DNA of 64,000 nucleotides from Macrostomum lignano (GCA_002269645.1 NIVC01000012.1:1302001-1366000); one strand, 5' to 3'. Shown: positions 30,701 through 36,700, numbered from the stretch's first letter. Notes: generated from the sequence alone by a model not told the origin. Numbers and translations are program-made.

Positions 30701-33700
30701 GTGATTCAATCCAAGTGAATCAGGGGAGTGATTCTATCCGAGTGAATCAGGGGAGTGATTCTATCCGAGTGAATCAGGGGAGTGATTCTATCCGAGTGAA
30801 TCAGGGGAGTGATTCAATCCAAGTGAATCAGGGGAGTGATTCTATCCGAGTGAATCAGGGGAGTGATTCTATCCGAGTGAATCAGGGGAGTGATTCTATC
30901 CGAGTGAATCAGGGGAGTGATTCTATCAGAGTGAATCAGGGAGTGATTCTATCCGAGTGAATCAGGGAGTGATTCTATCGGAGTGAATCGGGAGAGTAAT
31001 TCTATCCGAGTGAATCGGGGGAGTGAATCTAGAGATCACGAACCTGGACAGTGATTCTTCTAGAAGAATAAAGTCTTGGAGTATCTCTCAGTGATTGAAT
31101 TCACTCACCCTGCTTATGCGCCAGAAACTCGGCCACCAGGCAGCCCTGGTGCAGGTTCCAGAACCGCACGATGCCGTTGGCACCGCAGGACACCAGGTTG
31201 GCCGCTTGCTTGGCCTTCGCTTTGCGATTTGCCAGGACTCGCAGTCTGGATATTGTGAAACCGGAGTCCATGTCCTGCAAGCATGAGGGTGGGTTTAATG
31301 CGTTATTAAATCGTAAATAAAAATTCATATTGTATTCTCGAATTTATTTAGATTTAATGTAAACAGTATGTAAACTCACTCTGATACTCACTATCTGGTT
31401 TTCACTCTCTAGATTCACTCCGGTTGTCATTCTCCAGATTCACTCCGGTTGTCACTCTCTAGATTCACTCCGGTTGTAACTCTATAGATTCACTCCGTTT
31501 GTCACTCTCTAGATTCACTCCGGTTGTAACTCTATAGATTCACTCCGGTTTTCACTCTCTAGATTCACTCCGGTTTTCACTCTCTAGATTCACTCCGGTT
31601 GTAACTCTATAGATTCACTCCGGTTGTCACTCTCTATATTCACTCCGGCTGGCTGGCACTCTCTAGATTCGCTCCGGCTGGCACTCTATAGATTCACTCC
31701 GGTTGTAACTCTATAGATTCACTCCGGTTGTCACTCTCTAGATTTACTCCGTTTGTCACTCCCTAGATTCACTCTGGTATATAATAAGGTTCTATAAAAA
31801 TTATGAAGTATAAGGGTCTCCAATAGATACTCTCGGATTCACTCCGTGGAGATAATCTCTCTTGAGATTCGCTTTAAAACCAACCTGCTGCTGTTGTCGG
31901 TCGCTACGCGCCGACCGGCGTCTCTCGCCGCTGCCAGCCGAACTTGACGCTTGCCGACGCATTGTCGAACAGCGCTGGCGCATCTTCCTGGTGCACACCT
32001 CCGAGCTGATGTTCCATACGGCGATCATTCCGTCGTAGCTGGCCGTGATGAGGTAGTGCGGAGCGCAGTACGCAGCCGCGAGGATGTCGTCTCTATGCTG
32101 GTCGAGCTCTCGCCATTCGCCGGGTTTAATTCTGAAAAGCGGTGAGATCGCGGTTCAGTGATCGAATGTTGACCGATTCTTGGAGCTTTAGTGAGACACC
32201 AATCCTTGATGCGTCAGTGAGACACCAATCCTTGATGCGTCAGTGAGACACCAATCCTTGATGCGTCAGTGAGACACCAATCCTTGATGCATCAGTGAGA
32301 CACAAATCCTTGATGCGTCAGTGAGACACCAATCCTTGATGCGTCAGTGAGACACAAATCCTTGATGCGTCAGTGAGACACAAATCCTTGATGCGTCAGT
32401 GAGACACCAATCCTTGATGCGTCAGTGAGACACAAATCCTTGATGCGTCAGTGAGACACCAATCCTTGATGCGTCAGTGAGACACCAATCCTTGATGCGT
32501 CAGTGAGACACAAATCCTTGATGCGTCAGTGAGACACCAATCCTTGATGCGTCAGTGAGACACCAATCCTTGATGCGTCAGTGAGACACCAATCCTTGAT
32601 GTTTCAGTGAGACACCAATCCTTGATGTTTCAGTGAGACACCAATCCTTGATGCATCAGTGAGACACCAATCCTTGATGCGTCAGTGCAGCGTCAGACAT
32701 CGCTACTCACCTGATATCCCTAAAACTGTTCGTCCTAAACACGGTGATGTCCTTTGAGAAGCCGCAAGCAATGAGGCTATGCTTCAGCACCAAAATCTGC
32801 GAGATCTCAGCGGACACACCTGGACGATTACAGTCGAGCTCGTGGTACATGTGCCCGTTCCAGTCCCAAATCTGAAGGTGAAATTTGAATTTTTAAAAGG
32901 TCACTTTGTGGTGCCACATTGAAGGTCTGAGATTAGAATTTAGTGAACGCTCTCATTCCCAACTGTGCGGTCTATTTTTAGTAGTTTCAAGCGGGCGCAC
33001 TGGAGGCGGGACGCTAGGACTTAACACGACCCTGGAGACCAGTTTCGTCTATTTTAGGTCAATAATGCTCTGCTTTGCTATATAGAAAAACGGCTAAGCA
33101 GCAGGTGACTCAGGTCTTTAACAAGCAGTGACGAATTTCCAACTAAGACAGTTCTGCCACTGAGTGAAGTGGGTTTTGAAACAGAAGAATAGAAACCAGC
33201 GAAGACTGCAGTGCCCTGCCGAGCCCCTGCCCTATTAATAGCGGCCTCGTTCAGCCCTATATAAATACAGCTATTGCAGTTAGGCAGGCCATCCATTGCC
33301 ACTCTTCAAACAAAACTGCGGTTGAAAGCATGCCAGCAGCACTGCACTGCCTGGAAGCCGGTCTAGCTCGGCTTGCCGTCACCGCTCTCGTGCTGGTGCT
33401 GCTTAAAGTTATTCGGCACTTGCAACAGAATGAACGGCACAGCTCGCGGGAGAAGTTCACCCCGACGTGAGTACAGACAGACAGATAGGCATACAGACAG
33501 ACAGACAGACACACAGACAGACAGACAGACAGACAGACGGACGGAGACAGACAAGACAGACAGACAGACAAGACAGACAGACAGACAAGACAGACAGACA
33601 GACAGACAGACAGACAGACAGACAGACAGACAGACAGACAGACAGACAGACAGACAGACAGACAGACAGACAGACAGACCAGACACTAAGACAGACAGAC

Positions 33701-36700
33701 AGACAGACAGACAGACAGACAGACAGACAGACAGACAGACAGACAGACAGACAGACAGACAGACAGACAGACAGACAGACACAGACAGACGGACGGAGAC
33801 AGACACACAAATAACATCCCTACATCACCGAACCCGTCAGATGCCAGACAGTCAACAACAGCGAGGCAAGCTCAGAGCTGCGCCCGACAAAGTCGGTGCG
33901 GTTCTGCAGCCAGCCAGACCAAGTGATGCGCTACAGCCTGGGCCGGTGCCCCTGCGTCGAGTTCTGGCGCTGCGGTCGGAAGCGCTACCGCAAGGTGTGG
34001 AACGTGTCGACGCTTCGCGCGTCGCAGAAGCTTCGCTCTTTGCCGAATAAAAGTACAATTAGCGAAACGGCAAAGAGAGAGCAGCTGAAGAAGAATATCT
34101 TGCAACAGTTTGTTGCCAAGTGCTTTCAACAGCTGTCAGCAGCTGTGTTTTCAAGACAATGATTGTCACACATCATATAATTGATTAATTACCTTATATA
34201 GAATGTCTAGTAACTGAAATAATATTTTTCAGGCATTGACAATATTTGATAGTTGCATTTTGCATAACATGTATAAAAATAAAAAAAAATTTTTTAAAAC
34301 GTTGATATTAAACATTCGATTTGTGTGACTTCTATCAATCTGACATCACGTTTATCGATCTGACATCGTGTTTATCAATCTGACATCACGTTTATCGATC
34401 TGACATCATGTTTATCAATCTGACATCACGTTTATCGATCTGACATCGTGTTTATCAATCTGACATCACGTTTATCAATCTGACATCACGTTTATCAATC
34501 AGACATCATGTTTATCAATCCGACATCGTGTTTATCAATCCGACATCGTGTTTATCAATCAGACATCGTGTTTATCAATCCGACATCCTGTTTATCAATC
34601 AGACATCATGTTTATCAATCAGACATCCTGTTTATCAATCAGACATCCTGTTTATCAATCAGACATCATGTTTATCAATCTGACATCCTGTTTATCAGTC
34701 AGACATCATGTTTATCAATCCGACATCGTGTTTATCAATCTGACATCGTTTTTATCAATCTGACATCGTGTTTATCAATCTGACATCACGTTTATCATTC
34801 TGACATCACGTTTATCATTCTGACATTATGTCTATCAAGCTGACATCCTTTCTGTCCATCAATCACCCCAAAAACCGGGTACGCACCCTAACAATTCCAT
34901 CGGTGCCACCTGAGTAGAACCTGGATTCAGCCGGGTCGTTTGCCAAAGTGGTGATCTCGGCGTCTCCGTGTGCATTTGGGGTCTGCCGAAGGCGCTGGCC
35001 CGTGTCAATCAGCCAGAAGGACAGGTTGGAACCTTGACAGGCGGTAAGCAGCTGGTTGAGCTGCCAGCTGAATATCACGGATGTTACAGAGCGATCGTGC
35101 GACAGAACCCGATCTTTCACTTCCGCTTTCATCTCTATTAGACTGAGTGAGTTGTTGAAAGTAAGGAATAGACGGTTGCGGTCTTCTTGCATGTACATCC
35201 GGGTTTGCACTGCGGTGGGGAGGCGGGAGGGAATGTCTGTCTGTCTGTCTGTCTGTCTGTCTGTCTGTCTGTCTGTCTGCCTGCCTGTCTGTCTGTCTGT
35301 CTGTCTGTCTGCCTGTCTGTCTGCCTGTCTGTCTGTCTGTCTGTCTGTCTGTCTGTCTGTCTGTCTGTCTGTCTGCCTGCCTGTCTGTCTGCCTGCCTGT
35401 CTGTCTGTCTGTCTGTCTGTCTGCCTGTCTGCCTGTCTGTCTGTCTGTCTGTCTGTCTGTCTGTCTGTCTGTCTGTCTGTCTGTCTGCCTGCCTGCCTGT
35501 CTGTCTGTCTGTCTGTCTGTCTGTCTGTCTGTATGTCTGTCTGTCTGCCTGCCTGTCTGTCTGCCTGTCTGTCTGTCTGTCTGTCTGTCTGCCTGCCTGT
35601 CTGCCTGCCTGTCTGTCTGTCTGTCTGTCTGCCTGTCTGTCTGTCTGCCTGTCTGTCTGTCTGTCTGTCTGTCTGTCTGTCTGCCTGTCTGTCTGTCTGT
35701 CTGTCTGTCTGTCTGCCTGTCTGTCTGTCTGCCTGCCTGCCTGTCTGTCTGCCTGTCTGTCTGTCTGTCTGTCTGTCTGTCTGTCTGTCTGTCTGTCTGC
35801 CTGTCTGTCTGTCTGTCTGTCTGTCTGTCTGCCTGTCTGTCTGTCTGTCTGTCTGTCTGTCTGTCTGTCTGCCTGTCTGTCTGTCTGTCTGTCTGTCTGT
35901 CTGTCTGCCTGTCTGTCTGTCTGCCTGCCTGCCTGTCTGTCTGCCTGTCTGTCTGTCTGTCTGTCCGTGTCTGTCTGTCCCTCATATTCCAAGTAGCATA
36001 ACCATCTGTTTTACACAAGCAGCGTGCACATCAAGAGCGAATTCTCAGGCAGATGCAGGTTTGGTTGGTAGTCCGCCATCAGAAATAATCATTGTAAAAA
36101 TGTTTTCACTCTTAAGCATTTGCAATTTTGCTAATCAAATCGAAAATTATACTTTTTTTCTAAATTTCGCCCACAGACAAAAAACTTTTTAGAGATGAAT
36201 TTAGAATGATGTTGCTAACTTTGTGAAATCTGCATTTGACCTTTGTTAGAGACGATTTTATTAAAGAAAGAAAGTTCATGATGTCACAAATGAGTATCAA
36301 TAACAGCAGCGATGTCAAGGAGCTGGACATGCTGGTGTACCAGAAAGTGAAATCTGCAACACTCTTCGCGTTGTTGTTGTTGGTCATCAACCTGCTTCAG
36401 TTTGGCTACTTTGAGGTCAGGTAGGAGACTTGCCAAATCAGCGTTTCATTTGTGAGCAAATAACTCTAACTTGCGCCCTTTCTGACACCCCAGCTCGCAC
36501 CCTCTGTTGACACCCCAGCTGAATCCTCCTCTCTGACACCCCTCTGACACCACAGCAAGATCTCTGACACTCTGGCGCTCTTCCGGACACCAGACAATTT
36601 GGCGTTCCTAGAGCTTTTTCCTAGAGGTAAAGAAGAGCTAATAAGAGACATAATTCAGTTTGATATCCTTCCTTGAGCACGCCATTTATTTCCTTATTAT

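Follow-up and report, generated by a model that had tools for sequence, protein, structure and literature searches.

A small species-restricted gene nested antisense in a WDR49-like intron of Macrostomum lignano and its speculative PP1-docking motif

In a 64,000-nucleotide stretch of the Macrostomum lignano genome (GCA_002269645.1, NIVC01000012.1:1302001-1366000; hereafter the window), a complete two-exon gene occupies the plus strand within an intron of a minus-strand WDR49-like gene. The exon-intron structure of this nested gene is legible in the DNA itself, the same structure was annotated with stranded RNA sequencing (RNA-seq) at homeologous loci, and the only relatives found belong to M. 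lignano. Overall, this is an unremarkable small gene, lineage-restricted and annotated before, whose proposed function is speculative, namely the targeting of protein phosphatase 1 (PP1) from a membrane, which the first-pass annotation of the window had proposed.

Structure of the nested gene and its host intron

The nested gene begins with a TATA-like box, TATATAAATA, read directly at 33258-33267 (+) and identical in the two homeologous copies deposited in GenBank, L001 (NIVC01001112.1) and L002 (NIVC01003191.1). An ATG at 33330 with a conserved A at position -3 opens the coding part of exon 1 (33330-33466, +; 137 nt, codons 1-45 plus 2 nt), which is the same exon as in the GenBank proteins PAA72114.1 and PAA52740.1 and is closed by the donor GTGAGT, at 33467 and directly after GAC. 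The following GT-AG intron (33467-33840, +; 374 nt) consists almost entirely of a (GACA)n microsatellite, which Tandem Repeats Finder (TRF) delimited to 33473-33809 with approximately 83 copies, and its acceptor, CCCGTCAG, ends at 33840. The coding part of exon 2 (33841-34162, +) supplies residues 46-152 and a TGA stop codon at 34160-34162. The exons join in phase, and the spliced coding sequence (CDS) of 137 + 322 = 459 nt yields 152 codons plus the stop. A 3′ untranslated region (UTR) follows at 34163-34300 (+), with AATAAA at 34278-34283 and then an A/T run, both read directly. The donor, the acceptor and the AATAAA of the 3′ UTR are all conserved in L001 and L002.

Each element listed in the first-pass annotation, from the TATA box and ATG through the phase-matched, (GACA)n-filled intron to the stop codon and AATAAA, was therefore found where it had been placed. 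That annotation was also correct that the gene is not represented as one open reading frame (ORF), given that the mechanical ORF list for the window holds it only as the separate ORFs 33330..33470 and 33896..34162. When the inferred 636-nt mRNA was shuffled with its dinucleotides preserved, an ATG-initiated ORF of at least 152 codons arose in only 0.07% of cases, so these signals have not simply come together by chance.

Subsequently, tblastn with WDR49-family proteins, combined with splice-site reading, placed host exons on both sides of the nested gene: one upstream in the host direction at 34887-35210 (-) and one downstream at 32710-32871 (-), with contiguous query coordinates. Between them lies a GT..AG host intron of 2,015 nt (32872-34886, -) that encloses the whole nested unit. 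This unit, from 33258 to approximately 34300 (+), fills about half of the intron and leaves at most 390 nt to the host 3′ splice site and at most 600 nt to the host 5′ splice site, an arrangement repeated in L001 and L002. The upstream exon is 97.6% identical to the M. lignano model P0008 and 40-55% identical to models P0007, P0009 and P0013. The host takes its identity from its best named homologues outside flatworms, which are 'WD repeat-containing protein 49(-like)' of fish, gecko, primates and molluscs, because a search of the PDB for a solved WDR49 returned only generic WD40 proteins. The flanking minus-strand exons and the named homologues agree with the original placement of the gene antisense in a WDR49 intron; its numbering as intron 13 is plausible, with at least 10 host coding exons upstream within the window. 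Host exons run from 51651 to 15928 (-) or beyond, so that the host gene covers at least approximately 36 kb of the window; its N-terminal exon at 45097-45333 has a weak EF-hand match, and a host paralogue, BOX15_Mlig013568g1 (P0007), shows approximately 43-84% identity to the host exons. The nested protein has no relative elsewhere in the M. lignano proteome in a HMMER scan, so the nested gene appears to be specific to the host locus.

An ab initio UniProt model, P0035, instead treats the GC-rich block 33853-34052 as a minus-strand host exon, joining 34052-33853 and 33413-33366 after the host exons 38696-38511 and 35210-34878, and an 85-residue minus-strand ORF at 33872..34129 is indeed open. 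However, the WDR49 homologues of M. lignano, a cestode and gecko run from 34884-35210 directly to 32710-32877 with contiguous query coordinates, leaving no room for an extra exon. Read in the minus frame, the differences between homeologs across the exon-2 span amount to 3 synonymous and 8 non-synonymous changes and 3 stops, and the RNA-seq-based GenBank annotation has a plus-strand gene at this place. A host exon opposite exon 2 is thus most improbable, and we rejected it on the grounds that the homologues skip the block and that in this frame the differences are mostly non-synonymous and stops occur.

Complete small genes lying antisense within an intron have a familiar precedent in OMG, EVI2A and EVI2B, which are nested in an intron of NF1. 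The gene described here likewise has its own promoter and poly(A) signal; it differs in that its host intron measures only about 2 kb, half of which it fills.

Two further features of the coding region were observed. Another AATAAA, followed by an A-run, lies within the CDS at 34046-34052 (+), in the codons for L113-P-N-K-S, and could be either a premature polyadenylation site or a site of assembly or sequencing slippage; the UniProt model A0A1I8HGB5 stops at this place following a single-base difference in the A-run. A 70-codon ORF in the +1 frame, with its ATG at the first base of exon 2, overlaps the CDS at 33841-34050 (+). The frameshifted UniProt models A0A1I8FHJ9 and A0A1I8FQJ4 read part of this +1 frame, which is not favoured by the substitution pattern (2 synonymous and 9 non-synonymous changes).

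Prior annotation, transcripts and relatives

The gene had been described as hidden and its product as a new microprotein, and neither description survives comparison with the databases. GenBank PAA72114.1 and PAA52740.1 (hypothetical protein BOX15_Mlig016731g1/g2, Mlig_3_7) model the identical ATG, splice and stop position and match the window product with 94% identity over 100% of its length, 9 of 152 residues being different. UniProt A0A1I8HGB5 matches the window allele exactly at residues 1-116 and is then frameshifted in the A-run of the internal AATAAAA, and A0A1I8FHJ9, A0A1I8ISR9 and A0A1I8FQJ4 are further models of the same gene. These entries share the exon-intron structure and the antisense place in the WDR49-like intron, and all are uncharacterised as to function. 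At L001 and L002, the gene lies antisense to a multi-WD40 gene of 1,096-1,109 residues that spans the whole locus. The window accordingly adds a third copy, homeologous or allelic, of a gene that had been annotated before, in a species that is a hidden polyploid with duplicated loci. We considered and rejected a transposon origin, since the 3-4 copies are the number that hidden polyploidy predicts and every one of them occupies the same host intron.

The splice sites of the nested intron are fixed among the copies while its length is 374 nt in the window, 1,096 nt in L001 (10234-11329) and 260 nt in L002 (10177-10436), differences that arise from expansion or contraction of the repeat. After the donor, L001 and L002 both carry approximately 19 nt (TGGACTTTGGGAACATTTA) that the window copy lacks.

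The GenBank annotation was produced by genome-guided RNA-seq assembly with StringTie and TACO under the option '--no-assemble-unstranded', with novel transcripts kept at a minimum of 0.5 reads per kilobase per million mapped reads (RPKM >=0.5) or where they overlapped mappings of the de novo transcriptome; trans-splicing and poly(A) data set the gene boundaries, and TransDecoder called the ORFs (PMC5730564). Through this stranded annotation, the predicted spliced plus-strand transcript is indirectly supported, at least for the homeologous copies. Both GenBank CDSs are flagged as partial, the frame being open upstream of the ATG. The partial CDS of L002 (10001-10039) starts 39 nt before the ATG and approximately 31 nt after TATAAA, which fits a TATA-directed start near window position 33291. 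In L001, the partial CDS (10001-10096) already starts upstream of the TATA box, 96 nt ahead of the ATG; this mismatch would reflect either two start sites or read-through transcription that was assembled into the L001 model. Several of the UniProt models are frameshifted or truncated, and judging by their sequences the shifts look like assembly indels in homopolymer runs. Such shifts are typical of ab initio splicing applied to an older long-read assembly with indel errors.

Beyond these models, a word-indexed search of 5.8 billion proteins retrieved only M. lignano entries in two clusters, and a full HMMER scan of 1.84 billion representatives likewise retrieved only M. lignano models in two clusters, one of which is a frameshifted 352-residue prediction; these searches covered protein collections, not the genomes or transcriptomes of other Macrostomum species. 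For the 152-residue product, no Pfam family was detected below E = 0.1, and no PDB chain at E up to 10. A sub-threshold Pfam match to Antiterm (E = 0.13) was dismissed. In the available sequence databases, then, the gene is an orphan restricted to M. lignano. It resembles the flatworm- or species-restricted M. lignano genes of PMC5816591 in its small product, its 'hypothetical' label and its want of an outside homologue, and differs from them in that the supplementary tables of that paper, whose files may be incomplete, did not list Mlig016731.

Coding constraint, protein product and the PP1-docking proposal

To delineate selection on the gene, we compared the window copy with L001 and L002, whose CDSs are identical and thus represent a single homeolog type. 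The copies differ at 16 of 459 nt, giving Nei-Gojobori estimates of 0.028 for non-synonymous divergence (dN) and 0.053 for synonymous divergence (dS), with a dN/dS of 0.52. The ORF length is kept, and the homeologs end in TAA at the same codon. The annotated frame is the only one of the six free of internal stops and the one with the most synonymous changes, and the CDS has a GC content of 56% (68% at third codon positions, GC3) compared with 43% across the window. No difference between the copies falls in the first 91 nt, and all nine amino-acid changes fall within residues 31-51 and 128-142. Residues 52-127, a stretch picked for the constraint test after the data had been seen, carry 4 differences, all synonymous and at third positions, and no non-synonymous one (P = 0.012); the substitution density of this 76-codon core is 1.8%, compared with 5.3% in the rest of the CDS. 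The core holds the pentapeptide KSVRF, a CPC...C hairpin and a basic patch.

The product is strongly basic (27 K+R versus 9 D+E), with seven cysteines at positions 7, 47, 68, 82, 84, 90 and 140, six of them after the N-terminal helix, and three N-x-S/T sequons at N51, N100 and N115. That hydrophobic helix, at residues 10-28 or thereabouts, and KSVRF are both present as the first-pass annotation had reported, the latter being read directly as a match to the RVxF consensus at residues 63-67 (33890-33904, +). The hydrophobic segment itself is ambiguous, because its uninterrupted core of 11 residues has the length of a signal peptide, yet its Kyte-Doolittle maximum of 2.2 (19-residue window, residue 10) suits a membrane span. 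No small-residue (-3, -1) cleavage site was seen by eye after the core (KVIRHLQQ). The flank after the core carries a charge of approximately +3, compared with approximately +1 before it. Under the established positive-inside, or charge-difference, rule, this sequence pattern points rather to an anchor that stays uncleaved and leaves the C-terminal part cytosolic. A single-sequence AlphaFold2 model (predicted local distance difference test, pLDDT, 59; predicted template modelling score, pTM, 0.26) has an N-terminal helix at 3-37 with a block-mean pLDDT of 84-90 over residues 11-30, a disordered stretch at 37-82 with pLDDT <50 that contains KSVRF, a hairpin at 83-100 and a C-terminal helix at 118-150 with pLDDT 73-90.

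From these features, we consider it about evenly balanced whether a young gene here encodes a small, basic protein with its N-terminal helix as an anchor. Under this account, an independent and probably TATA-driven two-exon gene would be transcribed antisense in the 2-kb WDR49-like intron in every homeologous copy. The modelled hydrophobic helix would insert the protein into a membrane, most likely as an uncleaved signal anchor with its C-terminal part in the cytosol. A predicted disordered linker of approximately 45 residues would carry KSVRF, with a short cysteine-containing hairpin (C82-P-C84...C90) within a basic patch and a putative amphipathic helix at 118-150 completing the protein.

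A number of observations weigh against this account. Transcript support comes from the homeologous loci and from a description of methods, not from reads on the window copy. Mlig016731 was found in none of the supplementary tables of PMC5816591, PMC5730564, PMC7336406 and PMC12896417, a weak negative given that the files may be incomplete, no exact protein copy came from another assembly source, and the window allele was absent from a 15-billion-protein collection in an exact look-up. Over the whole CDS, constraint was not demonstrable: at least 6 of 16 changes were synonymous in 27% of neutral Monte Carlo trials that kept the transition and transversion counts (P = 0.27). Sixteen random substitutions leave the ORF without a new stop half the time, so an open frame is weak evidence. 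The CDS has diverged by 3.4-3.6%, on a par with the 3.0% over 568 nt of upstream non-coding DNA, and the host exons differ by only approximately 0.5-2%, mostly synonymously; the 3′ flank and intron tail, at 7%, lie above the CDS. The structural model is of low confidence, the topology derives from rules of thumb and not from a predictor, and the automatic UniProt names, 'Secreted protein' twice (A0A1I8HGB5 and A0A1I8FHJ9) and 'Transmembrane protein' once, suggest a predicted signal peptide.

Part of this evidence would suit a functionless or very young proto-gene, that is, an antisense transcript whose ORF is not under selection and which TransDecoder called by ORF length alone. A dN/dS indistinguishable from 1, a CDS diverging as the neighbouring intron DNA does, the absence of relatives outside the species among the proteins searched and of Mlig016731 from the expression tables searched all fit it, as do the position of the locus between satellite arrays and its GC-rich DNA, which is open in several frames on both strands. 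We regard this as unlikely, though to be taken seriously, because an ORF of such length is rare by chance and takes up nearly the whole mature mRNA, both homeolog types retain its length, start and stop position, its core has accumulated synonymous differences only and at a lower density, and the TATA box, the A at -3 and AATAAA are all conserved. On the sequence comparisons, we take the nested gene to be genuine and protein-coding, though unproven and either young or under weak constraint. Alternatively, the N-terminal segment could be a signal peptide and the remaining approximately 120 residues an exported, small, basic and cysteine-containing protein, for example a gland or reproductive secretion. 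The two automatic 'Secreted protein' names, the short hydrophobic core, the even number of cysteines after the helix and the three sequons favour export, and the orphan status together with the fast-changing linker and C-terminus fits the rapid evolution reported for Macrostomum reproduction-related genes (PMC7336406). The segment nevertheless offers no cleavage site past its core, the positive flank favours a cytosolic C-terminus, and the gene was not found in the possibly incomplete supplementary tables of that same paper, so that secretion seems rather doubtful to us compared with the anchored protein.

Topology also decides whether PP1 could ever meet KSVRF. In the most specific proposal, the protein would be anchored by its N-terminal helix, with the rest cytosolic, and would recruit or regulate the PP1 catalytic subunit through KSVRF and the hydrophobic pair V74-M75; we hold this to be improbable. 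KSVRF does fit the patterns of Wakula, Hendrickx 2009 and Meiselbach 2006, including [RK]x0-1[VI]{P}[FW]; its surroundings are predicted to be disordered, and the charge-difference rule favours a cytosolic place for it. It is the same in both homeolog types, with synonymous changes just after it at S69 and Q73, although its conservation is known only between two homeologs that are 96.5% identical. Composition-preserving shuffles, however, contain the motif in 23%, 12% and 4% of cases under the loose, Hendrickx and Meiselbach patterns, respectively, and the non-genic ORFs of the window hold 0.13, 0.07 and 0.02 matches to these patterns per 152 residues. According to PMC4794898, which cites Hendrickx 2009, the loose RVxF consensus occurs in approximately 25% of all proteins. 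TKSVRF moreover fails the six-residue consensus [KR][KR][ACHKMNQRSTV]V[CHKNQRST][FW] given in PMC4794898, its first residue being T and not K or R. The same names, sequons and six post-helix cysteines that suit secretion would put the motif in a lumenal or extracellular place, beyond the reach of PP1. As a rejected candidate, the frameshifts of A0A1I8FHJ9 and A0A1I8FQJ4 might have been taken as a sign that KSVRF is dispensable; they occur at homopolymer runs and are compensated downstream.

The spinophilin peptide given in the first-pass annotation is right (RKIHFSTAPIQVFSTYS, PDB 3EGG chain C), and the product shares with it the spacing F-x3-P-x-Q-V-hydrophobic residue; spinophilin and neurabin (PDB 3EGG, 3HVQ) likewise have [RK]x[VI]xF and then P, Q, V and a hydrophobic residue at equal spacing (RKIHFSTAPIQVF). 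Nevertheless, the BLOSUM62 local score of 23 for the spinophilin similarity was reached by 6.3% of shuffles, and by 6.8% with KSVRF held fixed. Homology to spinophilin or neurabin was not detectable, the product is without a PDZ or actin-binding domain, and the likeness is one of sequence alone. PPP1R15A and PPP1R15B (GADD34 and CReP) are membrane-associated PP1 regulators with a KVRF/KVxF motif. The nested product shares with them a concept, a membrane-associating N-terminal segment with an RVxF-type motif in a disordered region, but no sequence relationship in Pfam, PDB or HMMER searches, and the PPP1R15 proteins are much larger and have a conserved C-terminal PP1/eIF2alpha/actin-binding domain, which the nested product lacks. 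Across Pfam, PDB and the full HMMER scan, the product showed no homology to any PP1 regulator. The PP1 regulatory role put forward in the first-pass annotation is consequently unsupported, as it depends on a short linear motif expected by chance in 4-23% of composition-matched sequences. Docking through KSVRF may be one possibility among many, a legitimate lead from the sequence and not a finding. A still bolder version, in which a very young gene confined to Macrostomum, which may have arisen de novo out of GC-rich intron sequence between satellite arrays, would encode an anchored microprotein with a working PP1-docking string, strikes us as a long shot.

Surrounding repeats and significance

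Several repeats accompany the nested gene. On one strand, its (GACA)n array (33473-33809) and a (TGTC)n array in the next host intron (35234-35979) are reverse complements approximately 1.4 kb apart, with 130-nt arms that are 86-88% complementary and the same arrangement in L001 and L002. The pair brackets nested exon 2, a 20-bp minisatellite and the host exon 34887-35210, and by its sequence could form long hairpins in the host pre-mRNA or in single-stranded DNA. Arrays of the (GACA)n type recur elsewhere in the window, with examples near 47955-48191 and 55021-55343. The 20-bp minisatellite (34333-34847; 26 copies, 90% matches) starts approximately 50 nt after the AATAAA of the nested gene, and a second minisatellite with a 26-bp unit (32190-32687; 19 copies, 96% matches) lies just 3′ of the host exon 32710-32871, in the next host intron; both are also present in the homeologs. 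Near the left end of the window, a separate gene is marked by a 235-residue open frame at 4172-4879 (+) whose product corresponds to the last part of the ligand-binding domain (Pfam Neur_chan_LBD, E = 1e-6) together with the transmembrane region (Neur_chan_memb, E = 1e-40) of a Cys-loop neurotransmitter-gated ion channel.

The locus illustrates that a genuine spliced nested gene can be reconstructed from raw sequence, and equally that a five-residue linear motif does not amount to functional evidence. It also shows tight packing, with a complete gene in a 2-kb host intron and an intron of its own that is nearly all length-variable (GACA)n microsatellite. Were the docking proposal true, the gene would provide a rare lineage-specific, perhaps de novo, PP1-targeting subunit within an intron of a WDR49-like gene associated with cilia, and the case would be a tractable one, since RNA interference and transgenesis are available in M. 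lignano.

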